DNA of 64,000 nucleotides, taken from NCBI GenBank assembly GCA_965202585.1, contig OZ241832.1, positions 61,380,001 through 61,444,000 of the forward strand, given 5' to 3'. Source of the stretch: Thalia democratica (lineage: Eukaryota). The notes under the pieces are model-generated. The model was given only the letters and a program-made list of their open reading frames with translations, was not told where the DNA came from and searched no databases. Positions 9,187 to 61,700 of this stretch are shown here, one piece after another. Made by a program: the position numbers and the translations under genes. The first letter of the stretch is position 1. Each line of letters starts with the position of its first letter.

Positions 9187-10445
9187 TCCTAAAGTTATTA
9201 ACAAATATATTTTAATGAGAATGTATGGAGAAATTAATACGCTTTGTTTTATACTTATATTTAAAAAAATTTTTTTAATGTTAAGAACCAAGTTTTAGAA
9301 TTTTTAAGGCGTCTAGAAGTATTATGTTCCACACAAATTAAGAGTTTGCACAAAAAACCTAGCTATAAAAAACATAATGAAATGGCTGAAATAAAACTAT
9401 AAACCTCTAGTTGAACAGCACCAAGTTTCAAGTTAACAGAAAAAACATTTTATGCCACCTAACTAGAATTAAACAAAGTTATTTTTTTAACATTTACCAC
9501 CATGTCCTAAAAAACTAAATGTTATTTTTACCAACAACAGCCAAATTAAATTTTTCAACTAGTTTTAATATTCTGTTCTAAGATCGCCAAGGCAAAAAGT
9601 TGCAAAAGGCTAGAAACTAAATTGATACAATTTATGTTAACCTTAATACAATTGAACTTTATCAACGAAATTTAATCATTTCAACAAAATTCTCCTCCAA
9701 GTAAGCCAAGGAGAAAACCACTGCAACCAAACACAGAATTTGAATTTTTATCAACAAAATTCTCCCAATATATTCTTCATGTCTTCATCCAGACTGTCTT
9801 CACTAGACTGTTTAAATCTTAAAGTTATAAACAAATATATTTAAATGAGAATGTGTGGAGAAATTAATACGCTTTGTTTTATACTAACAAATAAAAAAAA
9901 AACTTTTAAATGTTAAAGGATTAAGTTTTAGAATTTTTAAGGCGTTTAGAAGTAATATGTTCTACACAAATTAAGAGTTTGCACAAAAACCTAGCTATAA
10001 AAAAATATAATAAAATGGCTGGAAAATTATAAACCTCTAGTTGAACAGCACCAAGTTTAAATTTAACAGAAAAAATATTTTATGTCACCTACCTAGAAGT
10101 AAACAAAATTATTTAATAATATTTACCACCATGACCTAAAAAAGCAAATGTAATTTTACCAACATCAGCCAAAATAAAATTCTTAACTAGTTGAAATATT
10201 CTGTTCTAAGATCGCCAAGGCAAAAAGTTGCAAAAGGCTAGAAACTAAATTAAATTAATACAATTGAACTTTAACCTTAATACAATTTTATTTAACTTTA
10301 TCAACGAAATTTAATCGTTTCAACAAAATTCTCCTTTAGATCAGCCAAGGAGAAACACACTGCAACCAAACACAGAATTTTTATTTTTTCAACAAAATTC
10401 TCCCAATATGTTCTTCATATCTTCATCCAGACTGTCTTCACCGCT
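9187..10445. repeat. Approximately 630-bp tandem duplication covering the FCP1 stop codon and 3' UTR
   Basis: 9187-9810 aligns colinearly with 9817-10445. For example, GGAGAAATTAATACGCTTTGTTTTATACT and CTAAGATCGCCAAGGCAAAAAGTTGCAAAAGGCTAGAAACTAAATT each occur twice. Confidence 0.92.
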
Positions 10446-13400
10446 CGATGATGAATCTTGATCAACCGACATGTTCGAACCTGAACTCGAAATTATTTTC
10501 TCATCACCGTAATCCTCCTGTTCCTCCTGATCCGACTCCTCGTTTTCGGGTTGGACACTCCTGATTTCAGGTCGCTTTTTGGGTTTTTTGGGGATTCCAG
10601 GCAAGCTCGACCCGCTCACCAAGCGCCTCTTGTGCTGGCTGCAATTAATTAAAGTTTTTTATTAAATGTTGAGATAGAAAAATTTTTAATTTTATTTCAT
10701 CTGGCTGCAAATTGTTTTTATACGATATAATTTACAATGCTTAACTATGAGATATAAATATAATTACAACAAAACTAACTAAGTTCTTCAATAAGTTATA
10801 TGGTTTGAATTAAAACTTTAAACTGTACTTTGAAACCAATAAGTATATTAAATTTTCTATCAATGTTAATCTAAATACTTATTATCTTTTTTACAATAAA
10901 CAAGCTTTCTAATCCATTTTTTCACTCTCCCTGTATATCAAATTTAAGTTAACAATCAAAAAATGGCCAACCCCGCAATTAAAATGACAAGCAACTAAGT
11001 TTATATGATAAAATGACAATAACCACCTGTCGAAACCAACTTTTTTACGCGCGTCGCTTAAACATTTACAAAACAAGTTTGTTTTTTTAATACTAGAAGC
11101 ACGTCACAAATATCTGCGCAAAACACTCTACAACATTCGCTTTTTAGATAAATTTATCGAGTGTTCACCACGACATAACAATGTAAAAATTGTTCAAATG
11201 TTTTTATTGATATTAGTTCAAAATTCCAGGTTATTCAGTGATTTTTGTTCAAAATTTCAAGTTTTTCAGTTATTTTTGTTCAAAATTCCAGGTTTTCTAG
11301 AGATTTTTATTCAAAATTTCAGGTTTTTTAGTGATTTTTGTCCAAAATTCTAGGTTTTTTAGTGGTTTTGGTTCGAAATTCAGGTTTTTAAATTATTTTT
11401 GTTTAAGTTTTAGAATTATTTTTGTTCAATATTCCAGGTTTTTCAGAGATTTTTGTTCAAAATTCCATGTTTTTTAGTGGTTTTGGTTCAAAAAAATTCA
11501 GGTTTTTAAATTATTTTTGTTCAAAATTCCAGGTTTTTCAGTGGTTTTTATTCAAAATTCCAGGATTTTCATTAATTTTTGTTCAAAATTCCAGGTTTTC
11601 TAGTGATTTTTGTTCAAAATTCCAGGTTTTCTAGAGATTTTTGTTCAAAATTTCAGGTTTTCTAGAGATTTTTATTCAAAATTCCAGGTTTTTGTCAAAA
11701 TTTCTCAAATTCCAGGTTTTTTGGCAAATCTGTTATACAAACCCTGATATTCACGAAAATAACCGACTCTCTTATGAATTTCTCCTTCCCGCCCCAAAAT
11801 ATTTACAAAACAACCGACTCTCTTATGAATTTCTCCTTCCCGCCCCAAAATATTTACAAAACAACCGACTCTCTTATGAATTTCTCCTTCCCGCCCAATA
11901 TGTTTACAAAACAACCAACTCTCTTATGAATTTCTCCTTCCCGCCCCAAATATTCACAAAACAACCAACTCTCTTATGAATTTCTCCTTCCCGCCCCAAA
12001 TATTCACAAAACAACCAACTCTCTTATGAATTTCTCCTTCCCGCCCCAAATATTCACAAAACAACCAACTCTCTTATGAATTTCTCCTTCCCGCCCCAAA
12101 TATTCACAAAACAACCAACTCTCTTATGAATTTCTCCTTCCCGCCCCAAATGTTTACAAAACAACCAACTCTCTTATGAATTTCTCCTTCCCACCCAATA
12201 TGTTTACAAAACAACCAACTCTCTTATGAATTTCTCCTTCCCACCCAATATGTTTACAAAACAACCAACTCTCTTATGAATTTCACCTTCCCACCCAATA
12301 TGTTTACAAAACAACCAACTCTCTTATGAATTTCTCCTTCCCGCCCAAAATATTTACAAAACAACCAACTCTCTTATAAATTTCTCCTTCCCACCCAATA
12401 TGTTTACAAAACAACCAACTCTCTTATGAATTTCACCTTCCCACCCAATATGTTTACAAAACAACCAACTCTCTTATGAATTTCTCCTTCCCACCCAAGA
12501 TGTTTACAAAACAACCGACTCTCTTATGAATTTCTCCTTCCCGCCCCAAATATTTACAAAACAACCAACTCTCTTATAAATTTCTCCTTCCCGCCCCAAA
12601 TATTTACAAAACAACCAACTCTCTTATGAATTTCTCCTTCCCGCCCCAAATATTTACAAAACAACCAACTCTCTTATGAATTTCTCCTTCCCACCCAATA
12701 TGTTTACAAAACAACCAACTCTCTTATGAATTTCACCTTCCCACCCAATATGTTTACAAAACAACCAACTCTCTTATGAATTTCTCCTTCCCGCCCCAAA
12801 TATTTACAAAACAACCAACTCTCTTATGAATTTCTCCTTCCCGCCCAAAATATTTACAAAACAACCAACTCTCTTATGAATTTCTCCTTCCCACCCAATA
12901 TGTTTACAAAACAACCAACTCTCTTATGAATTTCTCCTTCCCGCCCCAAATATTCACAAAACAACCAACTCTCTTATGAATTTCTCCTTCCCACCCAAGA
13001 TGTTTACAAAACAACCGACTCTCTTATGAATTTCTCCTTCCCGCCCCAAATATTTACAAAACAACCAACTCTCTTATAAATTTCTCCTTCCCGCCCCAAA
13101 TATTTACAAAACAACCAACTCTCTTATGAATTTCTCCTTCCCGCCCCAAATATTTACAAAACAACCAACTCTCTTATGAATTTCTCCTTCCCGCCCCAAA
13201 TGTTTACAAAACAACCAACTCTCTTATAAATTTCTCCTTCCCACCCAATATGTTTACAAAACAACCAACTCTCTTATGAATTTCTCCTTCCCACCCAAGA
13301 TGTTTACAAAACAACCGACTCTCTTATGAATTTCTCCTTCCCGCCCCAAATATTTACAAAACAACCAACTCTCTTATAAATTTCTCCTTCCCACCCAATA

Positions 13401-16400
13401 TGTTTACAAAACAACCAACTCTCTTATGAATTTCTCCTTCCCACCCAATATGTTTACAAAACAACCAACTCCCTTATGAATTTCTCCTTCCTGCCCCAAT
13501 ATATTTACAAAACAACCAACTCTCTTATGAATTTCTCCTTCCCGCCCAAAATATTTACAAAACAACCAACTCTCTTATGAATTTCTCCTTCCCGCCCCAT
13601 ATGTTTACAAAACAACCAACTCTCTTATGAATTTCTCCTTCCCGCCCAAAATATTTACAAAACAACCAACTCTCTTATGAATTTCTCCTTCCCGCCCAAA
13701 ATATTTACAAAACAACCAACTCTCTAATGAATTTCTCCTTCCCGCCCAATATGTTTACAAAACAACCAACTCTCTTATGAATTTCTCCTTCCCACCCAAT
13801 ATGTTTACAAAACAACCAACTCTCTAATGAATTTCTCCTTCCCGCCCAGAATGTTGCTCCCGAACTCCTCCCCACTGCTCTCGCTGTCTTCCTCGTACTG
13901 AGCCCTCATCTCCGGCGGCATCGCCAGCATCATCCTCTGCTTCCTCTCCTCCTCCGTTTCCTCCTCGAAATCCTCCCCTTCTTCAGATGAGGAGTTTGAG
14001 GAATCGTCCGAGAGTCCCTGGAGTGAAATTTTTGGTAAAAATATAGTGGATTTGTGTGACTGTGTACTTTTTACTTTATAGATCACAACAAAACTTCTAG
14101 ACTTAATTATGAGAAGAATGATCAATTCAAAATTAATTTTTAATATAACAGCTCAATATAACAATATCAAAAAATATTTTTTTGCTAATAACAAAGATCT
14201 TAACTAAACAACTTTGTCAGAATATGTATTGACAATAATTTATTAGATGTGTTATTAATTTTTTAAAATTCTGACTTCTATTTTTTCAGTATTCTTTTTT
14301 TTACTATATGAAGTGTGTAAATGGTACAATAATACAACGTGTGTAAATTTTAAACAAAGCAAGTACTTTGCGGATCGTTGTTAAAACAAAATAAAATATG
14401 TTGATTTGACAAGCACAAAAAATGTTGATTTTTAATAAAGGCTAGTTTAATGCCTACAGTTTATTAGGTTAGTTTTTTATAGTAAATTTCAATAGCAAAT
14501 TAATACCAGACATTGATGTTGTTTTAATAATAGTTTATTAAAAGTTTACTGACGACGGATTATAAATCTGAAAACGTTTTTAACTTGTGCGATATGCAAA
14601 AAGTTTGTAGATTTTAAAAAACTATCTTTAGAATTTTTCTATCTGTTGATGATGTAGAAAAATCACAAATAAAAAACTGACTGTGTCGTGGACTTATTTA
14701 AGAACTTTAAAATAAATCTTGTCTGTTATTTTAAGACGAATGTTTACCCTGAAAGTAACACAAAAACAAATCAAATAAATTTTAATTTGAATTTAACACA
14801 AGCGATTTTGATAATTGTTAATTTGGTCGTCAATAAATTGCGGTTATTCTTATATAAATTAAAACCAGTAGAAGTTATGTCTACAACCTTTTAAACCAGC
14901 GGTTCTTAACCTCGGTTAAATTTACCCCTGGAGCTAAATTCCCTTGCTTTAAAGAGAATTTTTCTTTATCACAAACTGTGTAACTAAATATGTATACATG
15001 GTATTTTTTATTTAAAATTCAGTATTTAACTGCTTTTTTTTGAAGTTTAATAAACTCTTTATATATTACGATTTTTTTATATTTGATGAGCTTTAAGTTC
15101 CAATGATTCTTTTTTTTTCTCAAAATTATACACTATTTTGTATTTTGAGGGTATATTTAGTCATAACCTTCCAAAAAGGCCAAAAAGGGGTAAACAAGAA
15201 AAAAAGTTTTTAAACTAACATTTACATAACTTGTAATAAAGACAAATTTACCCCCCTAAAACAACAGAATACACCCCCAGGGGTAAATTTACCCTGGGTT
15301 AAGGATCACTGACCTCTAAACAAATGTTGATCTAAGCTGAGATAAGTGATATAAAAGCTATGAAAATAAAAACAATTATTTTTCACTCACTAACACAACA
15401 ATCATCAACAATTTGAGAAAGAATTACTTTTTACCAAACTTACGTCTAAAAAAGAACAAACAAGCTTTTTTTACTCCCAAACATTATTTCTTTAAAATTA
15501 ATCTAAACTTATTTAACAATCTTTTTTGAAACTAACGTCTATTTCCGCCATCATAGCTGCCATACCTTGTTTGTCAGCCAAAAATTTATCCAACATTCTG
15601 CCTTCGTTATCCGACTTTTTCTCTTCTTCTTGCTTCTTCTCTTTCGCTGTAAGTTTATTTTGTTTGTGTGAAAAAAAATCACGGATCACAAAAAATATGA
15701 CCTGTTTTGGAAATTTCTATCCAATTTTTACGCTAAAGAGAAACAGTAACATTACAGCAACACGGTACTGACATTTAAACCCACATTCCTATTTACTAAA
15801 ATTTTAAACATATACAACCTTTGAAAAGATAAATAGAAAACTAACTCAAAAAACCACCCCCTGACCCATTTCACCCAAACGTGTTTCAGAAAGTACTTTT
15901 TATAACTAATTAAAACTTGATAGTTCATTTAAATATAAACAATTAGTATTCTATCTTTAACCAATCAATCAACAAAATCGGCGAAAGTCTGCAGAACAAG
16001 TCCGGACTTTCGTTTGCCGTGAGACAAGCTCAAATTTAACAAAAGGGTTGATCATGCCAATTCGATCATCAGACCACAAGTTTCGGTCTCAGTCTACCGA
16101 AACTTGTGGTCTGATGATCGAATTGGCATGATCAACCCTTTTGTTAAATTTAACCAATCAAATATGAGCAGTACTTATTTGAGCCGGTTTATATTAAAAT
16201 AAACTCATATTACTGTATTTTCACCTTAAATACTTTGTGCAAACAGACCAATATGAACTTAGAAATCATTAAAAATTATTTTATAAATGTTTATTATTCA
16301 ATATTTAAAAATAGCGTCTAATTAAGTTTATAGAATTTTATATATATTAATAAAACCTTTATCATTGTCTGTGGAGTCCTCGTCTTGTGACTTAATTTCT

Positions 16401-19400
16401 TTCGGTTTCAATTTCTTCACCTTAAAATTGTTTTCTGGTTCTTTCTGCCACCTGGTGGTTAAAATTAAAAAATATTTTTCCAAGGTATTTTATGCTGATT
16501 TAAGATTGAAATAACTATTTTAAACTTAAAGAATAAAGATGTGCAAGCTAAATATTTTATTCACAACTGGGTTTCAGTGACAAAAAATTGCGACCTCTTC
16601 AGGTTAAATAAAATACTAAACTGCACATAACAATGCTGCTTATTAAGTTAACACAAATAACTACAAAATTAAAGAATAAAAGCCATCTCTTAAAAGTTGA
16701 TTAATCTCAACTGTAGAGTATTAATTTGGCAGAAAAAAGCAAAATAAGCAAAATCAGCGAGAAAAATAGTTTTTAGCTTGTGTTTTTTTTTAGAAAAAAG
16801 TAAATTGCATTATTTTATGATTAAAAAAATCTAGTTGTGCATACTACAACTTAACTTAAATAAATATTTGAATAAAAATTAGTATTTAAGTAACAATAAA
16901 TCATTTTGTTGACAACTAAACTAGCTTTCCATTTGATTCACAACAAACTTAGGAATAATATTTCATTTAAGAATTAATTAATTGTAGTTAATTTAATAAT
17001 TGATAATACTAACTTAACTAACGTTTCATTCAATTTAGAAATTTTAATAAAATTTAAAACAAAAAATAGCAATAACATTTAACGTTTAATCACATTTTCA
17101 GAGGCATTTCTAATTAACTTTTTTTTCCTAAATTTAATGTGTCAAACATTCAAAAACACAATAAACACATATTAAGTTAGAGGGGTAGGTGTCAAATATG
17201 CGCAAGCAGACAAAATTGCACGAAGATACTTTTGCACAAGGGGACTAAATTGCACAAAGACACTTTTGCACAAGGGAAATTTTTGCACGGGCTAATTATT
17301 TTATTTTTATTTTTTATTAAATAGTTTTTTTTTTTTTTTTTTTTGTTTTACTATCACTGTTACCCCTAATCGTTACCCTTAGTCAGTAACTTTTTTTTTC
17401 AAACAACTTATCTTTTAGTTTTTTTCTGTTTTTTTTTTACTCTTGTGCAAAAAAGACCCTCCGTGCAAAATTGTCTTCGTTTAATTTTGTCCGCAATTTT
17501 GACCCGTTTCCAAGTTAGACAGATTTGGTACTATTTTAATTAATTAAAATAACAAAACCAATGTTTCATTACATTTCTACAGCCAGTTAAAACTAACTCT
17601 TTAATTAATTTTTAACTTAAATATTTTGAATATGAAACAGACATAAACCTGACAAAAAAATTATTTTAATGTTAGTTATTAAACTTAAATTTATAATTAT
17701 CATAGGTAATAATTATTTAAAATATATTAACAACAAACGTTTCATTGCATTTCCACAACCACTTTTCAGTGACAATTTGGATTTTCAACTTTTTGGCGTC
17801 TTTGTGCTTCACAGTGCCTGGATTTGCATTGACACCACAAATTAAATGGGTGGTTTCTTTTGTTACCTGTTTATTAAATTATTATATTAGTTATTATGTT
17901 TTAATATATATTTGCAGATATAATACTGGATTAACATTCACACCTTAAAATTAAACGGGTCGTTTGTTTTGTTACCTGAAAAATAATAAACACTTTATAA
18001 GTTAAATCTATCTTTGATTAAATCTATTTTCATGTTGAATAGTAACAGTAAATGAGTGGTTTTTTCGTTACTTGTGGGATTATTAAACACTTTTTGTAAT
18101 ATTTAAATATACTATTTTTTTGCATATGTTTGTTTATTAACTTTAAGTTTATGTTTAACAGTAAGCAAACGATCACTGTCATGCTTGTTATTAAATTCAA
18201 CTAATTTGGCAATTATATGAGAATAAAACTAGAATATAACAAAGAATTGTCAATATGTATACTAAAATATTGCAATCAAAATGAAACTTAATAAATGTTA
18301 CCACCAACTAAATAAGCAACTAAACGGGATTTAAATATAATAAAAGATTACCAACGAAACAAATTCATATTATAAATTATAAATAAACAAATTTTTTCAT
18401 AAACATTAGCTCCCATTAGTTTAGCAACAACTCAGGTGTTACAAATTTAATAAAATAATTCAATAATACAATTAACTATATTAAATAAATAAACAAATTT
18501 TTTCATGTATATTTGCGCCAGTCAATTAAGCAATTACATTTTATATCAGCTTAACTCAAACCAATTTTCAAATATTTGTCATTTTTAATATTATTATTTT
18601 ACCACAGATTTACAATTTGAAAATCCGCTCTGCGGTGAAACTGAGTAATTGTTTATTCTCAAAAATAATAAATTATTAATTATCAATCTCCTATTAGTGG
18701 ATAGATTACTGTGTCTTATTTATTTGTTCTAAACTCTCTAGTTAAATTACATAACTTGGGTGTAACAATTCAAAAAAAAAAAAACTAATAACAGTATAAC
18801 TATTATAGATAATAAATAAACAAACCTTCTCATGAATATTAGCTACCATGAATTTAGCAATAATATAACTTAGATGTTACGGTTTAAAATATAATAAATT
18901 TTAAATAAAATAATCAAACTAACTTTCTCATGAATACTAGCTCCCATCAACTTAGCAATAGCATGACTTGGATGTTCTCCCTTCGTATTTACATCCCATT
19001 TATTTGGTACAACTCCAGTGAATGCAAGATTGCAATTCTCAAGTGTCTGTAATAATTATTGTTTATAGTATACTAAATTATTAGCAAATAACTTATTTAG
19101 TACAATTCCAGTGAAAGCAAGATTACAATTTTCTAATATCTACAGAATAATAATTGTTCGTTTATCTAGTTTTTTTTTTTTTTTTTGTTATTTTGCATAT
19201 TTGGTAACACAAAAATAATACTTTTGCAAATCTATCAATTCAGTAAAATAATTACTTTTTCATTATTATTATCATTATTATTAGTATGTACTTCGATTTT
19301 GTAGTTATTAAAACTATTCCAGAAAAAGCTACAATGCAATTAGTCATGTCTGAACTTAAAAAATATTAATATTTCACAATTCAATTATAACTAAAAATTG

Positions 19401-22400
19401 GAAAAACAATAATTTTATTTCTGGAAATTCTTTGTTTTACTCTAAAAAATCGATACAGAAGTCGTTATAGTAACTTGTTGTGGAATATATAATTTAAATT
19501 GAATTTATTACTATAGTAGATGAGCCTGTTATTTTATAGAGATAAATAATTTATGACGATACTAATTTAAACTACGTTATATAGTAAATGATATAAAAAA
19601 ATAATTTTAAACAGTTTACTCTATTAATTATACGTTTTTTATTTATAACATACTATTATAGTATATTTCTAAAACTATTTGTGTATCATTAAATTGAAAT
19701 ACTTTGGATATTTGTTATATACAAATGTTTCTTTATTACAACAAAAGTTTTGAAAACTCTATTTTATCATTACATAAACAAAAACTGTGTGACTAAATAT
19801 TTATATAACTATCTCTTCAACAAGAACTAATTTTTAAACTCTTAAACTTAACTTGACTCAATACTAAACAATAATAAACAAAATTAAACTTTTTTTCTGA
19901 GAAAAGGAATTATTTCGGAGACTTGAGGCATGATTTTTTTGTTTTTATTTTTGCATTTCTTGTAAGCCTTGTAATATTCTTCATGGACCTTGTTCAAAAT
20001 TCCACCCAATATGTTGAGGTAGGTGTCGTTGTCAGTTGGAACTGTTTGAAAATAATATTATACATTTAAATTATCTTAAATTCAACCCAATATGTTTAAA
20101 TAGTTGTCGTGAGGTACTGAATAGAAAAAAATTATATATTAATTATTTATTATCCAAAATTCTACCGAATATGTTTAAATAATTGTCATTATCAACTGGA
20201 ACTGTTTGGAAATAAAGATTTTGTTTATTTATATATTCTACAGTAACAGTATTATAATATTTAATAAAACTCTCAAATCGTCCTTAGGTATGTTAACTAT
20301 TTTGCTGAAGAAGAATATGAAAGTACTCCAAACAATATGAGAATAAAATAAGAACTAAGCAGATTTTTTTGAAGTATAGTTGTTTTTATATATAGCATTT
20401 ATATATTTTATTATTTTTCAAAACTAAACCAAACATATTTAGGTTACTGTCGTTGTCAAATTGAACTGATGTGTAACAAAATTATATTTTTTATTTACTC
20501 AATTTTAACATATCTTAAAGTTCGACCCAATGTGTTTAGATATTTTTGTTACCCATTTGTTTAGATATTTTGCAAGTATAGGAGTGAAACATTGTTTTGA
20601 TTGTAATAAACTGTTGAAATAAATATTGGATATAAATCTCCTTAAAGACATTTAAGTCGAGAACTTTAAATTGTTTGATTTAAAACAAGTTACATTATTA
20701 TATTTTTGTTACCATAAAAACACTAATAACATCATTATTATTTATTTTACTTTTAAAAAATAAATTTAGATTGGTCTTTTTGGTACACAAACCATTAGAC
20801 AAATAGTTTTCGTGAACAATCATTCTAATAATTGCTTATCAAAATATTTTTTTTAAGCATATTTGGGCTTTTGTTTCTGTAAATGAAAATAATTTTTCAA
20901 ATAAACTGTGGTGTGTGCATTGCAAATAAAATAATTGTACATGTAGCTACAAAATAACAAAACTAATATTATTTTTCAACTTTTTTAAACCATCAGAAAA
21001 ATCTGACACACTCATAAGGATAACTTTTTGTGATACCTTTAGTTTCTTCTTTTTTATTTTTGCAAGAATCATTTTTCTTTGTTACGTCATCACTTTTATT
21101 ATTTACGTCACTGTTTTTATCCGTGTCTTTTTTGTCTCCATCAACGTTTGTTGTAGAAGTGACTTCGCATTCATCTATATAAATTAAATTGTGCAAAACA
21201 TATAATAATACTGTGCAAAAAAAGTTATAAAATTAAACATAAAGTGTGTGCAAAGTAAAATATATCAACCAGTATTTTCAAATCTGTGCTAGTTAGCATA
21301 ATATTTTTGTTTTTATTTAACTTAAACTTGAAAAAAAAATCAAGTTACAATATAAACATTAGTTTTGAATATTCATTGAACTGTTTTTATCGGAAATACT
21401 ACTTTTCAATAAAATTGCATATGCTTGTCATGCCGTTAAAAAGCGCATGCATTTTAAGTTTATAAAATAAAATGTGTTAGCAGCACGAAACTCTATTTTA
21501 AAATTAAATTAAAAGCCTTTCGTCAGAAGTAAAGCACAGGACTAATGCATCATTTTGACAATTTTAAATATAATTCAGAATTTTAGTAAAATATATTTTA
21601 ATATTCAGTTTAAATAAATCGATATTTTTAAAGAAAATTTATCTGAGTCATGTTTTTACCATAAATAACTCAATGTTTTAAAAAGCCCTACTAATCATTT
21701 TGTTCGTTACATTAATATTATTTGATTAGAGCGTATAATTAAATTAGCTTTTTTTTTTTGATGAAGCTTAATTAAAATAGGCTTGAAAAATTTTATAATA
21801 TAAATTTATAGAGAATAAAAAAATAAACTGGTGAAATAAGAAAAGATTTAGAATGACAAGCATTGTTACAAATGCTTAAAATTGAGTTAACCTACTTACA
21901 CACATTAAAATTAGAGTGAGAATTTTTTTTGTTATATCTTTTCTAGCATATACAAGAGTAAACGAAATACTTAGTAAGAAAATGTAATACTAAAACACTT
22001 AAATTAAAAACTAATGTTTTCTATATTTTAAGTTTTTGTCAAACTAAATCTAAAATCTGCTATCATCCAATATAAATTTTAAGACAGGCTAAAGTTGTAA
22101 ACAAGTATAAAATTGATCAGTCATTAAAAAAAATAAACTAACATGCAGAAAAATCAATTTTTAAATATAGAACAAAACAAGCATAAATTTTTTCATGCTT
22201 GTCCCTTAAAATGTAAAAATTCAATAGTTTTCATTGTATTTTCTATGTAAAATATATGTTGTTAAAAATAAACCATTTTTTGAGAGTTTAGGAGATGTTG
22301 CTTCATCGGTGCTGTCATCTAACTTCCTTTTCTTACCTTTAGTTTCCTAAAATAAATAACATTACATATTTATTTGTTTAAAATAAATATCATTTAAATA

Positions 22401-31538: not shown

Positions 31539-31915
31539 CAAGGATGCCACTTGTTTTACAAATTTTTTTTCAGGTTTTTCAAATTTCTTCCAGGTTTTTA
31601 AAAGTACACATTTTTGGGTCTACTTTTAGATTAAAGTTAAATTTAAAGTAAGAAACTGTGCTAAATAGTATAAAAATATTGAAAAGATACTGTAAAGCTA
31701 CTTAAAATGTGTTTTTTAAGAAAAAAATTTTTGGTAACGACTTAAGATGTTAAAGTTCTTAAAAATTCCAGGTTTCTCCAGGTTTTTTAGTCAAAATTCC
31801 AGGTTTTTCCAGGTTTTTTTCAAAATTTCTTAAATTCCAGGTTTTTCCAGGTGTTTTTTGCCTAAATTGTCAAATTCCAGGTTTTTCCAGAATTCCAAGT
31901 AAAGTGGCAACCCTG
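31539..31915. mobile_element. hAT-like MITE (CAGGG(T/A)TGCCAC-type ends)
   Basis: Ends CAAGGATGCCAC ... GTGGCAACCCTG with AAATTCCAGGTTTTT subterminal repeats. A further left-end-like CAGGGTGGCCAC lies at 31089, and a second truncated copy lies at 37833-38165. Confidence 0.7.
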
Positions 31916-37831: not shown

Positions 37832-37832
37832 C

Positions 37833-49700: not shown

Positions 49701-52700
49701 TTATAAAAACACCAAAAGCTTTTCAAAGAAAAAATTAAATCAATAGTTAAAAATATTAATCAACACTCTTGTTTTGACAAGAAAAACGTTATTCATAATA
49801 AATAAGTTGTCGTTGAAACTTTTATTAAAAAGGTATATTACCTTTAAAAAAGTACGTTAGTTCTTAAAAAAAAAAAACTTTAAAGCTCATATTACAAAGT
49901 AAAACTCACTCTGTAAGACAAAATAGGTTAGTTCTTCAAAAACTACTTTATAGCTTATATTACAAAATAAAACTCACTCTAGAAGGCAAAAAAGTTATTA
50001 GTTCTTCAAAAAAAAAAACTCTTGCTATTTAATTTATTTTACATATGTAATAAAACAAACCCAAGAAGTCCGATACTGATGAAGTTAATCCACATCTTAC
50101 CAAGATTTAATGTGGCAGCAAAAACTACGATGAATATCAAAGTTGATACGTATATAACTACAGCAGTTGCTCTGTAAAAAAAAAGAATTATTACTGCGAT
50201 AAATACCAATGTTGATACGTATATAACTACCGCAGTGGCTCTGGAAATAAAAAAAAATATATTCAATTATTGTTACTACGATGAATATCATTGTTGATTA
50301 TATAACTACTGATGTGGCTCAGTAAAAACATATTTAATTAGTATTACAATGAATACCAATTTTGAAACGTATACTACTACTGCGCTTGGTCTGTAGTAAA
50401 AATCGAAACTAGTAATATATGTTTTTTACAATTATAAGTATCAGTGTTGATATATATATTACTACATTGGATGCTCTGTTAAGAAATACAGTAATATTAT
50501 TATAAGTAGCTTAAATTTATATTTAATAAATATTGAAGTTAATATGAATGTTGAGTCTCAAAGTAAGTTAATTCAAATCTCACGAACAATAACTAAATTA
50601 ATGAGACTCGTAAACAGTTTTTTTTTCCTTAAAATTGGTATTCTTAAAAAAAAAGGTTTAATAAGTTTAATCTAACTTTTTAGTGCTATGTTTTACTAAA
50701 TCAACTTTTTTCTATAAAGTAAAACCCAAGTTTTATTTTTAAAGCTGTCCTAACTACAGATTTTTTTGTATCATAACATGTTTTTGTCGCACTAAGCATG
50801 CTGTTGTTATTGTCATCTACTAATTACGTCTATAAATATTGTACAATTAATGTCACTTTCTTACATTAACTAAACTTAATTCAATCGATAGTAAAATTTT
50901 ACGCCAGTTTTCTTACTGAAGCTGTTACAAAATGACTTTTATTAGAAAAAAATCATTTTCTATTCGTTTTAAACAGCTTCCTTTTTTTTTTAAACAAAAA
51001 CAGATCATAAATGTTCCATTAAACAAAGATATTTTTAGAAAAAAACACCACTGAACTCTTTTAAAAACAAGCTTTGCTTTACCTATTTTCAAAAACAATT
51101 AACTTATGTAAAAAATTGTTTTTTTCCGAACTTTTTGAAACAGCCATGATTTTCAGCTACGATTTATTCATTAAATTCTTAACTGTTTGAACCGAGTTGA
51201 ACATGAAGTGAACAAGATATCAGGTTAACCGAGGAACAACTTCTTTATGACGTCATAGCAACAATTCCCTTATGACGTCACAGTAAGCAGATTATGTCTA
51301 TCCACATAAGATCTACCTTTTCGTTTTTGTGACGTAACAAAGATCGATAGAAGGCGATTGATTTCAAAGGGGTCGCCTCAATTATTTATCGAATGAAAAG
51401 TTTGTTCTTTAGATGAAAAAGTTTAACTTTTTGTATAAAGTAGGTTGTCTAAAGTAGGGTAGGTTTTAATTTAAACTTTAAAAATATCAAGTTAAATAAT
51501 CTTAAATTTGATCAATACTTTTCAATTAACCTATACATTTTTAATATCTTGTTATGATCAACTCAAAAACGCTAGTTAAGTGTTAAAATTTTAGTCGGTA
51601 ACTTTTAATGTGATTTTTTGTGTGGTTAGACTTATATTATTTGAAATAATTTTCAAAAACAAATACTTTACAAAATTGATAACTTTGTAATTTTCAACTA
51701 TTTAGCAAAAACTCTTTGTAACTTCGTTTAAAAGCAAATAATAAAGCTTGTGTTTCATTCTTAAGGTGAATTACTTATGTATTGCAAATAAACAGCTTTA
51801 GCCAATATAGTATATAAAAACAGATTTTTTTTGTATCTTTTGCCAGAATAGTTTATGTTATAATACAGTATTTTATAAAAATTTACATAGTTGCTTCAAA
51901 ATCAACCAATGATTAATTAAGTCAAGATTTAGTTATCTAGTAGTTTTGTCTGTTTCACTAAAAGTTAATCAATAACTCTTTTGTGTCAGACTAACTGTGT
52001 GCTTATAAATGACTTTCCATTAAAAGAATAAACCAGCATTTTTTATACGTATAATTAACCTTAGTTAATCTAGAAAATTTAACTTTTCTTTTGTTTTCAA
52101 AATTGTTCAAATCTGCAGGTTAAACACTAAAACTTCGCGGAAAACGTTATACAAGCTTTTGTTTATTATATTATTAAACTTTTTGATAACAACGACACAA
52201 TATATTTGTTATTAACTGAAATCAAAAAGTATATATACAAACAAACATCTATTTTTTTATTCAAATCATAACTGATGTCAACTTTTTTATTTTCTTATAA
52301 TTTTACAAATGTACGTTAATACTAATAACAACAAACTTTAAACTTCAGTTTAGTTACCGCAACACAGACTAATTCATGTATTTAATCTTAGTTATGTATA
52401 AAAACTTTCAATATATTTCTATTTTGCAAACCACTATGTGTTATAACATTTGTTTAGACAAACTTGTAAGCTTTTGTTTTGTCCAGTATCACACCACATA
52501 TAGCTGACCCAAACAGACCAGCGATTACCATGACCAAACCAATAAGTCCGATTGTCGCTTCCACCCCCTGTTGTTACGTAATAATGTTAGAAAATTATAT
52601 GTGACGCAATGATATTAGTATTTTATTACTGTTGTTACGAAATAATGTAATAATAACAACTAGTTTAAAAGTTATGCCCTGATATTTTGTATATTCTAGG

Positions 52701-55700
52701 AATTACAGCAATTGATTATGACTTCATAGTCGTAGCTAAACTTTAGGAATTTAACAAATAAAACTTTAATTTTAGTTTAATCATTTTGAATGCAGACTTT
52801 TTTTTAACTTTTATGTTAACAATTTTTTTGCAAACTTGAATTTTGTTTATACAAAACTTAATGTTCAAAATAATTTAAACTTACATCGACACCTTTAAAG
52901 AACGGCACCATCAATGGATTTAGAAGAGTTCCAATTGCGTAGTATACACCCGTATTAATACCTAAAAAAAATTAATTAAACAATATACACTCGTATTAAT
53001 ACCTAAAGTGAAAAAGTTTCTAACATAAAGCAGTTCTAATAACTGAAATGTAAGCTAAATAAACAGTATACATACACTAGTGTTAATAACTAAAATGAAA
53101 TACATATACAGTATATACACCTGAAATAACGCCTAAAATAAAATTTTGATAAATAATAAACACTCGTATTAATAACTGCAAAAAAAAGTTTAAGTAAGTA
53201 ATAAACACTTGTTTTAATACCTGCAAAAATATAAACATTTCATAACAAAACACTTGTGTCAATTCCGAAAAAAGTAAACCTTTAAGTTAAAAAAATCTGT
53301 ATAAAACTATGTATTAAAAACTAAAAATTATAAGTTATTATTTTTTTTATAATTTCATACTAGGTAACAATATTAAAGAAAAAGCACTGAAGGATTTTTG
53401 ACTTGCCAAATAAATTTAACCTTGTATTCTATTTATAATAAATAGTTTGTCAAGTATTTTACAGTAACATAGTACACTAGTAGTTTATATGGACAAAAGA
53501 AAACAAATTTCTGAGTTAGTTTAGCTTAAAACTGAACTTTTACTTTGCTTTCAAACGTAAAAGCTAAGCTTAAGTAAAAATGTTAAAAATTAAACAGCTC
53601 AAGTTCAAGTTCAGTACAAATTTAGATTAAATGCTGAGGTTTAAAAACGTCAGTACAAGTTTGCTAGAAAAAAAAACTTGTTTGGGTTACGTAAGAGGTT
53701 TTACTTGTAAATTCGATGAGACTAAAAATTTAAAAACAAATTAAACCTTGTACTGAATTTATCCGAAGACTAGTTTAGCCATGCAAAGGCTTTACTTTAA
53801 GCATTTAAAGGTTAAACTAGTACCAAATAAATAAAAGTAGACAATAATGATTAAGCTTTTAAAACAGCTAAATTACATAAAGTATTTCTTTTTTAGTTTT
53901 CAGATTATAATAAGTAACATAAAACAGAAAAAATGAAAATTTGCTAAAGAAATTTGATATAGTATCGAAAATGAGCTTTATCCGAAAAAATCTGTTGGAA
54001 TGAGAACAAAAAATCCGCGAAAAACTAAAAAGCGACAAAGTTGGTCTTTTCGCTTTCTTCCGCGCATTTGTACCAGCGCCAATTTTTCCGCAGGTTGGAA
54101 AAAGACAAATCGTTGTTGGTGGCAAAATGCGCTTTATTACGTCATAAGGGAACGCACATGCTCAATTTCACACACAATTTGTCGCAGTAGAATAAAAGCA
54201 AACAAAGTGTTGTTTTGATGATCAGTAAACAAACTTGTTTTTTTTTAATTTTTTTTTTACATTTGTGTTATCTTGTTGTATGATTAATATGTTTGCTTAA
54301 TTAATTTACTTAACTTGTGTGCATAGTTTTGTTTTTTTGTTTTTTTTAAACCTTTGTGTTATAAGAATTAATCAAATTACTAAATCTATATTGTAACTTT
54401 TATGTAAAATTCACTTAAAATTTTATGTACTTTTTATGTTGTGGAAAAATTTTATATTATGAAGTTCTATTAAAGCAACACGTACATTCAGTAAGTTTTA
54501 TTTCTTTTATAATTTGCAGACTATTTTTCATGATTAATAATTTTTTCCGAAATATTAACATAAAAATTGTAGTTACTGCTGAACACTAGTAGCTTTATGT
54601 GTGCTTTATTAGGTTTTTATTTTAAAATTCGTCAAGTTTATAAGCAAGTTTTTGTAATTTCATATTTCTTCATATTATAACTAATATTTGCTAAAAAATC
54701 TACTTTAAATGTTTGCACAGTTATTAATAAACAAAGTGTTTATCGAAGTTTTCTTTTGTGAAATTTTCAAGGTTGTTTAACTGATATGAACTGAGTTTAG
54801 ATAAGCAACACAAGTACAAAGTTCGAATATACGAAACACTATTTTATTTGTTTGATTGTTATGATTCTAACACAGCTTAACGCAATTGAAAATAAAAATT
54901 TTCTTTAGGCAGAAGATTATTATTAAGTTTTCTAATTTGTTTCAACAACTATGACATACGTTAAAAGTATTAGTAAACATAAAAATTGGTAAACTGAAAG
55001 TCCGTTTAGCTCAACTATTCAACAAATAAGTATATTGTATATAAATATTACTTCATAATACAAACTTGTAAGTGGCGTAGATACACATTCAGTGTTAAAT
55101 TTTGCTAATAAAACAGAATATTTAATTCTACAAAATGAACAACAAATTTAACCTATGAATAATTTTTAAGTTTTAATTACTAAATTGGAATATTATAGCA
55201 TTCAAAGAATGTTCTAGTAGCACTTGAAGAATGTTATGATGCTCACTCTAGGACTTTCAAAAATAGAATTAAAAAAAAACACCTAAACTTGATTAAAAAC
55301 ATTATGCTTTGTATCCTGATATTATTATCTTTGAGTATTTAGGTAAAATGTTTGCGCTTTTTTACGCAGATTTTCATATACATAGTATAATTTAGCTTAC
55401 GTTTACTAGTAAGCAAACTAATAACCAATTTCAAAGTTCCACTTTAAAAAAGATAGTCATATATTAAATCTGAATAAATACTAATCATATTTATATCGAG
55501 TTGTCCGTTAAAAAAAACTTTAATTCTATTAAAATTTTCCTTTAACAAAATACAAAATGAATTAGTATTTATCAAATTTGTGTTCAGAAAACAACGTTAA
55601 TTTAAAAACAAGTTAAAAACCACCCACCATACGACAGGAAGAGAAGCACGAACGGAAAGTCGGTCAGCAGACTTCTTAGTGAGGATAAATAGTCTCCGAA

Positions 55701-58700
55701 AGGGGATTCCCCTCCTTTCTCCTCCTCCAACAACGTCTTGGACCTCGCCCTGGCCTTGGAGGGAGGGTGAGCCGGTTCGTCGGATATAACTTAAAAATAA
55801 AATTGAATTATTTTTTTTTTACCAGAGTATTTAATTTTCAAAACAAAATGGTTATTTGTTATTTTTTACTATTTATTATTAGACCATTATTTTGTCTTGG
55901 AGGGCAAGTGAAGAGGTTCGTCGGATATTTGATAATTTAAAAAAAATCCAAAAAATAAATAAAACATTAAAAGCATATATATTTATATAACACAAGGTTA
56001 AACAAAGTACACAAAAGATTATCTGTCTGTTTCGACTAGTAATTTTCCTTTTTGAAATTAACCCAACATGAATTGCTGAGAAGTTTTTTTTATGTTTGAG
56101 CACCACAGTATCCTGGTTTTGTAATATAAACGCTAATTATACATTAGAATATATAAGTTATACACTAATCAAGTTGGGCAAGTATACGTTTGTAGGAATG
56201 GTAGAGTAAAAATCTTAAGTTCTTAGTTAAGTAAGTTAATATAAATCAAGATAAAATCTTTGTGTTGTAAGCACATTTTAGATTTAGCATTATGAGGTTT
56301 TTTTTGTTTAAACAGTTAAAAGCTAACTAGACCATATTTATTAAAACTGATAATTCTGTTTATTTTTACATTTTAATCCAAGTAATAAGTGAACTATGAT
56401 AATTAAGCTTTGCTATGTATTAGAATAAAAATAATAAAAAAAATGTATATCTTTATAAACTGCTGTTTCGTCAATTATATAAAACTTATTAGCAATATAG
56501 TGATTAAATTGTTCTTTGTTTTGAAAAAAAATGTAAAAGAAAAACATTTTCCAAACTTGCTTATTTAGTTATATTAACGAGTTTTAAATCATTTTTTTTG
56601 ACTCCATTTTAAAAAATATGAGTGGATTCAACTTTGCACACATTTATAAAAATCTGCAAGTTGTTTTAACCTATTGATGTTATTTTGTAAGTCAAAGTTA
56701 GTCTGGATCACATTCAAATTGCCAGACTAAAAATGTCAATAAATGTTTCGTAATTTTTTGTCGAATTAAAATATCGAACAATGAACCAATAAAAAATAAA
56801 ACCAATAATTTTAATGACCTTGAAATCTATAAAGATGAAAGATATACAGGTCAACTTCAAAATATGGATTAGTACAGTTCTAACCTGCTGCTTTTATACA
56901 ATATTTGAAGTCTCTACTTGAGAAAAAAGTTTATGAGCATTAAAGTTTAATAAGTTTAAGTGTTTTTGACATAAAACTTCAGATTGCATCATTTTAACAT
57001 AACGTACTTAGATTTTGAAATATTTTTTAAAAAGCTAAAATTTGTGCTATAATAATCATATCACCAGATAAATAAAATAAACAGAACAAGTACACATAAA
57101 TTTTGTTAACATTTTTTAATTAAGATTTTTAAATATAATTAATAAATGCTGACGTAAAATTATTTCAAAAGTTACGAAAGCAAAGAAGCTACCCTTAGAA
57201 AATTATAAATCATACAATTAAAGAAAAACTAACCAAACACCACCATAATATCATAAAATATACAAACAATTATATCAATTGTAAAACTAATCTAATATAA
57301 TCATGAAAGCCACAAAAACACAAATAATTATTTTTATTCCAAAAATAATCTAAAATGTTCATAATTGAAAATAGCGACATAAAAGGCACGTATACACAAA
57401 TAACTACCTAAAATGATCATAACAGTCACAAAAACACAAGTATTTATTAATATTTTAAAACTAACCTAAAATAATAATCGAATCCACAGATAATTTTCAC
57501 TATGCTAATACTAACTTAGAAAAATCATGAAATCCACAGATAATTTTATTTATATTTTAAATTTAACCTAATATGGTCTCAAAGAAAGTTTTATGGATAG
57601 TAAATTTTTGATTAACAGTCAAAAGCTAACTAAATTTTTCATCACAGCTTTTTCTGACTTGTTTTTTTACTTTTTAGTGTAAGTAATAAGTAAATGTACA
57701 AGTTCAGCTTTGATTTGTATTTTAGTAAATACAACACAATAAAATGTATCTAAGTAAACTGTAGCTTGTTAATTGTTTAAAACTTATTAGTAAGTTAGTG
57801 ATTAAACTGCTTTTTGTTTTAAAAAATGTAAAAGATCTATATTTATAAACTTGCTTGTTAAGTTATACTAATGAGGTCCACCTCAGAAAAGTTTGACAAA
57901 TTTTCAAAAAACTTTAAAAGATATATTTTCTAAGTAGTATTTTACACAATAGAAATGAATTTTACTTCAAAAAAGTGATTAATAAATTACTTTAAATTAA
58001 ACTTTGCACACATTTATAAAAAGCTGCAAGTTGTTTTAACCTATTGATAATTTTTTGTGAGTCAAAGTTAGTCTGGATCACTTTCAAGTTGCCAGACTAA
58101 AAATGTCAATAAAAATTTCGTGAACAGAATTATTTGTCGAATTAAAATATCGAACATTAAAGAGGCAATAAGGAAAACCAATAATTCAATTGACCTTAAA
58201 GTTTGAATCGTTTATTTATACAGGTTAGTTTCGACTTATAGGTTAACATAAATGAAACACTTTTATTCTACAGTTAAATTTCACAAAAAAAAAACTTTTT
58301 AGCCATGCTTTTTTTCATAGAATGATTAACATACGTATTTAAAGCTGTTAGTTTAAAAATTATTTTCAAAGTTATAGATAGTAACTAAAATCAATTTTTT
58401 ACTGACAATTTTAAGTTAGTACCTTTTTTTTACTGGTTTAGTACAGACTTCAAAAGTTAAAATAAGACTTATTAAAAAGTAATTTAAACCAGGCTAACAA
58501 ATATATAAACATTATTGAAAAGACTACACATAAAACATCATTTATGGTAAACATGAAAACTCAATAAGATTCTTAACAAAAAGTGAAACTCCGGTTTCAT
58601 TCAAACTTTTAACTTGTCTGCTTTGGTAAATGTAAACCAGTGCATTAGTAGTAGCGAAGTGAATAAAATCACTGAGTTTTTGATAAGAAAACTTAAGCAA

Positions 58701-61700
58701 ATAGTGATACTTGTATTCCAGTAAAAGATTGAGGCTTAAGCTGACGCGAACAAGCTTTAATATTTAAAGCCTTTTTTATAACACCTTCACTTATTATTTT
58801 TGAACTGTTTTTTTTATATAGGTATTGAAATTGACAACTTTTTTACCAGTTTGAGGTCGTATTCAAACCGAGAGTTAAAAACAAAGCCTAACTCACTTCT
58901 AGACTTATAAAAGGATACAAACTAACAATTCAAAATACATAGGGTATGTAGTTATATGACTTCAACTATTACTATAGAAAGTATAAATAGACCTAAAACG
59001 ATATACAAAATCATAAGGTTAAAAAGAAATTACTTATCACTCTAAACTAAAAAGCATCATATAAGTTACAAATACACACACGCTAACCTAAAACGTAATT
59101 AAAGTTACAAAAAAAACCGAAAAATCTAAAATTTCCAAATTAACAATTAATCATGAAAAACTTAAAAACCACAAATAAATATCAATATTAAAAAAAAAAC
59201 TAAAATGATCATAACAGTCACAAAACACAAACAACAGTTAATATTTTAAAACAAACCTAAGTTGTTCATGAAAGTCACAAATCATAAGTAGTTATTAATT
59301 TTTTGAAACAAACCTAATAACATCATAATAGTCACAAAAACAAAAATAACTTTCAAAATTTTAAAGCCAGCCTAAAATGATCGTGATTTTGAAAAAGCAC
59401 AAATAATTACTAATATTTGAAAACTAACCAAGTATTATCATGATAGTAGCAAAGACAAAAATAACTTTTTAAATTTTATAGCAAACCTGAAATGATCATG
59501 AATGTGAAACAACACAAATAATTACTAATATTTGAAAAACTAACCTAGTATTATCATGATAGTAACAAAGACACAGATTGAGGCCGACATCCAGAACAAG
59601 CTCCTCAGACCAGTTTCAACCAAGACATCTTCTTCCAATTTGGCTGTTTCGTTCAACACCTGTGTGAGTTTTGTAAATTCACATAAATTATGTATATGAA
59701 AGTTCAATGTAAACATTTTTTCTCTAGTTTTGCTGTTTTAATAAACACTAGTTCAATTAAAGCACCGTTCAAGACAAAGAAAAAAAATGCAGGTTTATTG
59801 GTACTGAATGTATATTTTTATCTGTTTTAATTTAGTCGAAGAGTTATAGGTTAAACTAGATCGCTTTGAGCGATAATTTATTTAGTTACCTGTTTTTGTC
59901 TCACACCTGTTTAATTTTATAAATTTATACTAGTTAAAAAGCACATGGTAGTTTTCTGTTAATAAGAACTGTTTGAACTTTAACGCATTTGGAATATCTT
60001 TTAGTATGATTAACATTGCAGTACTTACTGTTTACATCCATTTTGCTAGTTGAATAACATTTTAAAATTTTAGAGAAGATAATTACAAGTATCATCTCAA
60101 GGGGGTTTAATTAAAATCGCCCAAAAGGGACGATGTCGTTTCTTTTCGGTTTATATTAAACTTTTCTTATCATCGGACTAAAAAGTAAAAAATTAATAAT
60201 GAAATAAACCCAAGTAGTTAAGCTAGTTCTTTGGTTGAAAACATGATTGTAAAATTAGCTGAATGAAGACAATATAATGTTTATCACTTTTTAAATACAA
60301 CAACATCTGACCTTAGTTGTTATATTAGCTTTTTGGTTAAATACTTATTCTAGTTGTAAAATAAACTAACTAAAAAAAGTTCGGTAAAAAAAAATCTTTA
60401 ATAAATACTACGACCCATAACAAACCTTGTGTAGTTGTGATAGTTTTTCGTTGAAAACTTGTTTAGTGTTATTGTTGTACCGTAAAAAATATAGTAAAAA
60501 TAATACATACTGATAACCTACAAAATTTCGAACAAATTTATTTTCATTGTTTTACTTCTTACCAGAGTAGTTTCATTAGCTGTCTCGTTAACAACTTGAT
60601 TGTAGATGTTGCTCGAGTAAGAAGGGACCATTAGTGGGGGTATAAGGAATCCGAAAGCGACACCTAGCTGTTAAATTATATTTCATAATAATAGGTTTAT
60701 ACAAGAAAGTTGGGGTAGAGGTTGTGAAATTACTGTTAACGTGTTATAATTTTGAGATTTACTTAAGATGCATTTTCGAGGTTAAATAAATAAAGATTGA
60801 TGAAAAATGAGTTTTTATTTAGCTGTTGTATAAATGAATACTTCATATATCAGAATTATAAATTTAAAAAAGTCAAATTGTAAAACTCTAAAACATATTT
60901 TTTTTAAACTCTAAATTACCCTATACTTAGCCAAACTTAAATTAATAACTTTTATATCGAACTAAATATATTGGTTTCTGAGCTTCAATTTAAATTTTCA
61001 AAAACATCCAGTTTTTGGTTCATATCAAAACATATCTCCTAAACCGTAAACTTTAATGTATTTTTTTTTAACAAACTCACCTGATTACCGAATACGCCGA
61101 TGGAGGTCGCTGTTGAGACTTTGGACGACTCGAACCACAGCGATGCGATTTTGGCGGGAATTTCTAATATGAAGGATTGGGCGCACGCTGCTACAGTCTG
61201 ACCTGGAAGTAATATGTTGTATGTAGTAAAAAAAAAATTTATCAAGACTCGGAATTTCTAATGTGATAGTTGGATGGAAGCCGATATGGTCTGGTCTGAA
61301 GTAAATGCTTTTTTTTGCTTTGTTATGTTACGCATTATTATGCTGATTGTGACTTAAAAATAAAGCTATCTAAACACTAGTTTGTTTTTAAAGGTAAGCG
61401 CTTTATTATCAAAAATAGATATCTTTTTACATAAAAATCATAAGCAAACTTTTTTTTTTCTAAAAACAACTTTACAACACTCCAAATTAAATTTAGCAAA
61501 CTGCTTAATATTAGACTCATTATCAAACAAATAATTACTAACAATCCGCTTAGCAGCAAGGTTTAAGGTAAAAAACACAAACTCACCGATGAAAGAGATA
61601 TAGAAGCTATCTGGATGAACTGAGAACAGCTTTATGACGCTCCCAGCACTGTTAAGCAAGCTCCCTATTATGAGACACTTTCTCAACCCGTACGTATCAA

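Follow-up and report, generated by a model that had tools for sequence, protein, structure and literature searches.

Partial copies of exon-intron junctions, which we term echoes, crowd the introns of two genes, FCP1 and FLVCR, in a 64,000-nucleotide stretch of DNA from Thalia democratica (GenBank assembly GCA_965202585.1, contig OZ241832.1, positions 61,380,001 to 61,444,000; hereafter the window, in which all positions below are counted). About four in ten of the junctions modelled in these genes are accompanied by one or more echoes, and every echo lies in the intron adjoining the edge that it resembles, with which it shares orientation and register. On the balance of the evidence we consider it reasonably probable (roughly 0.6) that the echoes descend from small tandem duplications that straddled exon edges, were tolerated by splicing and arose with a strong bias towards exon edges. 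The window has a GC content of 24%, with GC-richer islands, and all genes that enter into the finding are encoded on the minus strand.

The extent of the phenomenon was assessed with a 70-nt probe that took in 45 nt of exon and 25 nt of intron sequence at each junction and was aligned to the adjoining intron. A junction was flagged when its score reached z>=5 and none of 200-300 random window segments of equal length did as well. By this measure echoes were flagged at 19-20 of 50 FCP1 and FLVCR junctions (~40%), spread over 15 of 28 exons and found at 13 of 25 acceptor edges vs 6 of 25 donor edges (P=0.08). Junction probes outscored all of the random segments in their own adjacent intron only: against the reverse complement of that intron none of 50 was flagged (20 of 50 on the same strand), and against the intron flanking the opposite end of the exon none of 44. 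The contrast between the adjacent intron and the polarity controls is pronounced (Fisher 4e-7); echoes thus occur strictly locally, in direct orientation and with a fixed polarity, as would be predicted for tandem duplication. A self-BLAST of the window gave a concordant picture, with 114 direct vs 8 inverted high-scoring segment pairs, the direct pairs being for the most part separated by less than 2 kb. Tandem Repeats Finder (TRF) reported arrays at 11747-13852 (50 bp x 42, 94% identity), 23271-23716 (51 bp x 8.7) and 25238-25545 (95 x 3.2), with further arrays at 19995-20215, 43022-43313 (112 x 2.6), 50124-50260 and 59164-59573.

Echo units measure about 45-150 bp and match the live edge at 66% to 98% identity. 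Each holds one splice site and a truncated piece of exon (20-57 of 70-197 nt); complete exon copies are absent. Recognisable echoes account for 6021 of 27216 intron nucleotides (22%), and for 49-60% of the sequence in five FCP1 introns. A first-pass annotation of the window had proposed that recurrent duplication inflates its introns, which these figures bear out, and that the introns are built from echoes, which overstates the case for most of them.

The same annotation called for a comparison with intron-only positions, and within the window this comparison reveals a marked enrichment at junctions. When 70-nt intron-only tiles lying outside the mapped copies were run through the same procedure, 17 of 499 probe-direction tests were flagged, and these resolved into just three families: one that is in fact the exon 2 echo, a 31-bp satellite, and a 68-71-bp repeat at 49849-50012. 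Among tiles no more than 250 nt from an exon, 5 of 143 were flagged. Both rates fall far below the 20 of 50 obtained at junctions (Fisher P=2e-13 and P=1e-9, respectively), so that, per probe, intron-only tandem families turn up about one-tenth as often as junction-spanning ones. Counted as families, the split is 20 junction-spanning to 3 intron-only, where the expected junction share is about 0.12 (P=3e-16).

These counts depend on exon models that were built by hand, since a protein search with the exon encoding the DLDQT motif returned only two foreign FCP1 predictions. Both genes were reconstructed from stop-free pieces, homology, reading frame, splice consensus and frame-compatible splice pairs, and the models are partly borne out by spliced contigs of run X4, which was judged transcript-like because its depth falls on exons only and its contigs are spliced. 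FCP1 is identified by NIF-domain exons that match FCP1 homologues and by a BRCT exon (3e-9), and FLVCR by a match to residues 146-204 of human FLVCR1 (7e-12); a Pfam search of the FCP1 array exon and last exon found no domain. The consensus over all modelled donors of the two genes is GTNNGT, with G at +5 and T at +6 conserved and +3 often T (GTTAGT, GTTTGT). The exons to which the echoes refer are as follows.

28786-28581, minus strand: FCP1 exon 1, rebuilt model
27307-27224, minus strand: FCP1 exon 2, carrying a C.H...C..C motif
26100 to 17739, minus strand: span of FCP1 exons 3-13
26031-26100, minus strand: FCP1 exon 3
25101..25234, minus strand: FCP1 exon 5, model and X4 record 28
24212..24325, minus strand: FCP1 exon 6, model and X4 record 28
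23671..23783, minus strand: FCP1 exon 7, model and X4 record 25
21172-21037, minus strand: FCP1 exon 10, X4 record 25
19890..20041, minus strand: FCP1 exon 11, both edges in agreement with a transcript contig (X4 record 25)
18924..19046, minus strand: FCP1 exon 12, rebuilt model
17739..17866, minus strand: FCP1 exon 13, second half of the BRCT domain (Pfam BRCT 3.2e-9)
15646-15537, minus strand: FCP1 exon, rebuilt model
13821..14017, minus strand: FCP1 acidic exon (exon 16 of the first-pass annotation), its 3' end forming unit 1 of the 50-bp array
10392..10638, minus strand: FCP1 last coding exon, acceptor TTGCAG/CC at 10638, placed by frame-compatible splice pairing
62608-62412 (exon 1) to 48229-48062 (exon 12), minus strand: FLVCR, 12 coding exons
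61081-61202, minus strand: FLVCR exon 4
60563-60667, minus strand: FLVCR exon 5
59545-59659, minus strand: FLVCR exon 6
55628-55789, minus strand: FLVCR exon 7
52885-52961, minus strand: FLVCR exon 8
50061-50171, minus strand: FLVCR exon 10

Echoes had previously been noticed in FCP1 at exons 2, 3, 5, 6, 7, 11, 12, 13 and 16 and around the stop codon. All of these were recovered, and a donor echo at exon 13 can be added.

27368..27440, minus strand: exon 2 acceptor-edge echo, 66 nt upstream, CAG kept
26230..26318, minus strand: exon 3 acceptor-edge echo, 77%
25296..25580, minus strand: three exon 5 acceptor-edge echoes, 81-87%, AG kept in all
24973..25040, minus strand: exon 5 donor-edge echo, 89%, GT kept, +5/+6 changed
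24449..24615, minus strand: two exon 6 acceptor-edge echoes, 79-91%, both with TAG/GAGTTA
23844..24165, minus strand: three exon 7 acceptor-edge echoes, 69-81%
23091..23662, minus strand: exon 7 donor echo array, 5-8 copies, 73-91%, in 51-bp units of 43 nt exon and 8 nt intron
20150..20541, minus strand: exon 11 acceptor-edge echoes, 76-80%, CAG kept in all
19107..19395, minus strand: three exon 12 acceptor-edge echoes, 71-82%
18357..18862, minus strand: three exon 12 donor-edge echoes, 77-79%, spaced about 100 bp apart
17927..18127, minus strand: two exon 13 acceptor-edge echoes, 75-76%
17537..17618, minus strand: exon 13 donor-edge echo, 77%, G+1 lost
11747..13820, minus strand: 41 echo units of 50 bp, 60% of the host intron
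9184..10441, minus strand: 630-bp tandem duplication, two copies, 87% (self-BLAST 9184-9803 vs 9814-10441)

The most conspicuous of these is the 50-bp array behind the acidic exon. Each unit consists of about 30 nt of exon end, the donor GTTGGT and about 20 nt of intron, and the 42 units that TRF counts comprise one real unit, the live exon end at 13821-13852, and 41 echoes, in keeping with the earlier estimate of up to about 41 copies. The donor reads AGA/GTTGGT in 36 of the 41 echoes and GTCGGT in the other five. Sequence variants recur along the array as higher-order blocks (e.g., units 10-12, 16-18 and 26-28), and the unit boundary sits in a 5-nt microhomology, AACAT, common to exon and intron. 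A second candidate donor, GTAAAC, lies 12 nt beyond this one. Both candidates are present in every unit, and AGA/GTTGGT at 13821/13820, rather than GTAAAC, is most likely the live one, given the reading frame and the local GTNNGT consensus. It is probably the first donor of the array that is used, because a 50-nt unit shifts the frame. The 630-bp duplication takes in the end of the FCP1 coding sequence (its last ~50 nt) together with the stop codon and 3' flank; here the echo is the downstream copy.

Probe and copy mapping likewise recovered the FLVCR echoes previously described at exons 4, 6, 7 (weak), 8 and 10, and added donor echoes at exon 5. In the third gene, which lies between the other two, the reported repeat proved to be a genuine 112-bp array, whose unit joins the end of a long GC-richer open reading frame (ORF) piece (43251-43442) to about 55 nt of intron. 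The accompanying label of a BPI-like gene did not fare as well, as searches of Pfam, PDB and Atlas with the middle gene's pieces gave nothing usable and the label stands unconfirmed.

61251..61307, minus strand: FLVCR exon 4 acceptor-edge echo, old, 77%
60208..60357, minus strand: two FLVCR exon 5 donor-edge echoes, 66-75%
59145..59462, minus strand: three FLVCR exon 6 donor-edge echoes in 115-bp units, 73-89%
57255..57587, minus strand: second block of FLVCR exon 6 donor echoes, about 2 kb into the intron
55896..55946, minus strand: FLVCR exon 7 acceptor-edge echo, weak, 83% over 46 nt, AG lost
53025..53336, minus strand: four FLVCR exon 8 acceptor-edge echoes, 73-81%
50193..50465, minus strand: two FLVCR exon 10 acceptor-edge echoes, 80-89%
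43022..43313, minus strand: third gene array, 112-bp x 2.6, 91%, gene identity ('BPI-like') unconfirmed

Two FLVCR candidates were set aside: a match at exon 9 involves intron sequence only (-25..0) and was not counted as junction-spanning, and the 68-71-bp repeat at 49849-50012 lacks the end of exon 10. The echo nearest to exon 10 (50172-50240) is 69 nt long, equal to 23 codons, stop-free in frame and preceded by a CAG acceptor at 50240; it could potentially serve as an alternative acceptor, which would add 23 hydrophobic residues. Intron 6 also contains a 1.3-kb segmental duplication (56301-56824 vs 57605-58200, 73-85% identity).

With so many look-alike sites about, it had been suggested that the spliceosome must choose the first of the donors and the last of the acceptors, and at the junctions that could be checked this is what the X4 contigs contain. 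Record 28 joins 25762 to 25233 and 25100 to 24324 (FCP1 exons 4-5-6), and record 25 runs from exon 7 through 21172-21037 joined to 20041-19890 (exons 10-11). Around exon 5, whose most upstream donor is the one used in mRNA, splicing thereby passes over three intact upstream echo acceptors and one downstream echo donor; two echo acceptors ahead of exon 6, and those ahead of exon 11, are skipped as well. No use of an echo site was seen in X4 transcript contigs over FCP1 exons 4-6 and 10-11. Since the exon-proximal sites are the ones used in the checked transcripts, the echoes are removed with the intron. Within coding exons (19890-25849), 5-7% of positions differ between the X4 contigs and the assembly, and a second haplotype (X1) differs by about 8% over 25424-25776; either polymorphism in this species is extreme, or the RNA derives from a divergent lineage.

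The possibility that repeats were collapsed or expanded during assembly arises chiefly for the 2.1-kb array, whose copy number is known from the assembly alone, but as a general account of the echoes it is scarcely credible. Logan contigs of the DNA runs X1 and X2 match three echo regions (19967-20599, 23179-23711 and 24371-25030) with 0 differences. Echoes also appear beyond the assembled haplotype, the exon 5 acceptor echoes in the second one, about 8% divergent, and the exon 7 donor array, with 1 difference, in organism B, which is about 96-99% identical. Moreover, the array units bear individual substitutions and higher-order structure.

Once formed, the copies decay neutrally. Over 46 copies, the retention of live-edge bases is 0.56-0.70 for G and C but 0.79-0.87 for A and T, which amounts to decay towards AT. 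The donor G+1 is kept in 12 of 19 copies, on par with other G, and the acceptor G-1 in 21 of 25, marginally above other G (P=0.08). Differences at codon positions 1, 2 and 3 occur at rates of 0.163, 0.129 and 0.291, a 1:1:2 ratio that is expected if the copy changes everywhere and the live exon at silent sites only, and that calls for neither coding selection nor gene conversion. Neither G retention at donors and acceptors nor the codon-position rates in these copies gave any sign of selection on echo splice sites. The echoes earlier described as decoys give no indication of selection for or against them.

These data bear on the proposal that copies are kept by selection, be it as landing pads for U1 or U2AF, as a shield against premature polyadenylation in AT-rich introns, or as alternative exons. 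The slight excess of retained acceptor AG would agree with such a role, as would the in-frame acceptor of FLVCR exon 10 and the 41 intact donors of the big array, although the latter are intact because the array is young (94% identity). Against it, donor G+1 is lost as readily as other G, the parts derived from exons become AT-richer, differences by codon position follow the neutral pattern and echo sites go unused in the transcript contigs; we consider this proposal unlikely. Gene conversion from the live exon might instead refresh the copies, accounting for both their visibility and the mostly silent nature of their differences. Tandem copies are natural conversion partners, and differences at third codon positions are indeed twice as frequent. 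That 2:1 ratio is already predicted by simple divergence, however, and identity tracks block duplications rather than declining steadily away from the exon. Conversion could keep copies visible for longer, yet it could not create junction-spanning units, and as the explanation of the echoes it, too, appears improbable.

A more searching challenge was the null model of the first-pass annotation, in which duplications occur uniformly, junction-spanning events survive, and their GC-richer exon parts remain recognisable for longer. The live exon half is constrained, and exon parts do diverge about half as fast as intron parts. Yet detection power was equal in two simulations. In a substitution-only simulation, synthetic duplications of equal divergence were detected equally often whether intronic or junction-spanning; in an age-structured one, in which both copies evolve under AT-biased substitutions and indels while the live exon is constrained, the junction probe reached an integrated detectability of 0.118, as against 0.121 for tiled intron probes (ratio 0.97). 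The youngest families (87-98% identity) include at least 7 that span junctions and at most 3 that are intron-only, where a junction share of about 0.1 would be expected, and the exon-proximal intron tiles described above were seldom flagged. Equal detectability together with the young-family counts implies that visibility does not explain the excess, and the null is rejected in the window; we would give it little credence overall.

Several considerations weigh against our preferred interpretation of tandem duplication with an exon-edge bias. The first speaks directly for the visibility model: 42-nt exon-only probes recover 18 of 19 families and intron-only probes just 4 of 19, the exon part being the main handle on old families, as is expected when drift is confined to the copy and the live exon is under constraint. 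By the age-structured simulation this leaves the integrated comparison unchanged, but the indel and substitution rates used there are assumed ones. A tendency of GC-richer edges to duplicate more finds no support, echo-bearing edges being if anything poorer in GC than the rest (0.39 vs 0.43, P=0.06). The echoes of the FCP1 exon 5 donor and exon 6 acceptor are isolated patches of 33-48 nt amid unrelated spacers, and thus fit simple tandem duplication more poorly. Assembled contigs lose rare isoforms, so that minor use of decoy sites is possible. Finally, the base of the analysis is two modelled genes with 50 junctions, and FCP1 exons 14-15 (about 17500-16357) are uncertain and were excluded from the statistics.

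Under this preferred interpretation, the echoes are relics of local tandem duplications, whose units measure about 45-150 bp and each of which straddled an exon-intron junction. The AACAT unit boundary is what would be expected of slippage or microhomology-mediated duplication, and later unequal exchange enlarged the arrays, as the higher-order blocks of the 42-unit array show. Such duplications are tolerated since the copies leave with the spliced-out intron, and the copies decay neutrally towards AT. Exon definition and 5'-to-3' site choice are presumably what lets the spliceosome disregard the copies, in the manner of the human F7 minisatellite considered below. The tens-fold excess at exon edges relative to intron interiors would stem from a bias in where duplications arise, at exons or at their borders, and purifying selection would remove those lying wholly inside coding sequence unless they were in frame. 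The concentration at exon borders may concern either the births or the survival of duplications. In-frame 21-nt x 2 tandem duplications are found within coding exons at 21068-21110 (FCP1 exon 10) and 62511-62551 (FLVCR exon 1), so exon interiors are also hit and events survive there when in frame; an exon-centred hot spot filtered by selection fits these together with the duplication of the stop codon. The stronger claim that exon borders are themselves true mutational hot spots for small tandem duplications in this genome is one that we advance only tentatively, as a minority possibility. Breaks, R-loop edges or recombination tracts might end where conserved GC-richer exons meet diverged introns, in the setting of a hyper-polymorphic and extremely AT-rich genome. 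If this were true, such hot spots would be a major continuing source of intron DNA, silent pseudo-splice sites and occasional in-frame exon extensions, and would represent a way for introns to grow that has yet to be described in an animal.

The closest known counterpart is intron 7 of human F7, where a 37-bp variable number tandem repeat has a first unit that extends across the donor of exon 7 (Borensztajn et al., 2006, PMC1557585). It was shown experimentally that the identical tandem pseudo-donors of this minisatellite are silent and that the most upstream site is chosen (PMC1557585). The 50-bp, 51-bp, 115-bp and 112-bp arrays described here share its design, in that the live exon end and donor form the first unit, and the pseudo-donors are identical or nearly so in the 50-bp array and partly decayed in the older ones. 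However, F7 is a single locus of 5-8 units, whereas here 40% of the junctions in two genes are affected, acceptor edges more than donor edges, with up to 42 units and 22% of the intron DNA involved. Our literature search found single-locus cases and intron-gain models and no report of pervasive, junction-enriched echoes. The single-locus architecture is already known, and the pervasive form, at four in ten junctions, is new.

Intron-gain models offer a further point of comparison. In the Rogers model, introns are gained by tandem genomic duplication of an exon segment containing AGGT (Hellsten et al., 2011; reviewed in PMC3443670), and it might be supposed that the echoes are scars of such births, given that exon duplication including a splice-like site is the core of the model (PMC3443670). 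A small duplication of this kind is likewise harmless because the extra copy is spliced out. The model nevertheless makes a new intron inside an exon, while here existing introns lengthen from their edges and arrays accumulate. It would also set a copy of the upstream exon end against the acceptor, but the donor echoes adjoin their own donor, at a distance from the acceptor and often several of them. The swapped exon-end copies expected of AGGT intron gain are absent, echoes lying beside their own edge with 0 of 44 on the opposite side, and an origin of this kind is very improbable. Internal (partial) gene duplications involving exon and intron segments are said by Gao and Lynch (writing in PNAS in 2009) to be common and mostly neutral; to our knowledge, neither a strong preference for exon borders nor a comparable share of intron DNA has been reported for them.

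Introners, which are a transposon-driven form of intron gain (PMC9860276), resemble the echoes in that repeated sequence makes up intron DNA and supplies splice sites. They differ in being dispersed and bounded by transposon ends, whereas echoes match only their own neighbouring exon edge, and such dispersed repeats as were seen (the 31-bp satellite and 20450-20850) are not exon-derived. Nor do the units resemble the whole-exon duplications that give rise to clusters of mutually exclusive exons, as none has a complete exon with both splice sites.

Outside Thalia, the same type of event was encountered in the FCP1 gene of the psyllid Cyamophila willieti (GCA_041222665.1; L001 6879-7625), in the form of a 93-bp x 8 array with 99% identity. 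Its unit consists of the last 87 nt of the homologous DLDQT exon and GTAATA, with TAA microhomology at the flanks, and it too is a donor-edge array. It is, though, a single young array in an unrelated insect, and establishes that events of this type occur elsewhere without implying that they are pervasive there. The psyllid gene has a further 79-bp x 2 repeat at another exon end (L001 4175-4338), and on contig L002 (GCA_900617915.1) the homologous FCP1 exon is encoded twice (P0002). Echo arrays can mislead gene predictors: the psyllid annotation reads through its array, leaving the public FCP1 protein (P0001) with eight false peptide repeats.

How introns grow and how the spliceosome chooses among look-alike sites are long-standing questions that would become directly testable in a genome holding hundreds of natural 'F7-like' experiments, with one to 41 copies beside the real site, at donors and acceptors alike and at all ages. 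It could then be asked which copies see any use at all, how the real site is protected and at what pace pseudo-sites are lost. The tens-fold excess at exon borders, for its part, points to a position-specific mutation process that lies outside current models of intron evolution.

Other repeats in the window are of a different kind. In FCP1 intron 10, the segment 20450-20850 exceeds its flanks about 300-fold in DNA word depth in each of the three DNA runs, which marks it as a high-copy dispersed repeat; 20623-20698 and 36402-36477 share 100% identity. The 31-bp satellite, which belongs to a dispersed element and is not exon-derived, is present in 16 copies in an FCP1 intron (11200-11693) and again at 31756-31890 and 38027-38112. 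Lastly, an ORF at 37620-37832 on the minus strand encodes a RING finger (zf-RING_2, 4.7e-6), and its flank at 37833-38167 resembles 31615-31917, 6.2 kb away; the ORF may represent a fourth gene, or a duplicated or mobile unit.

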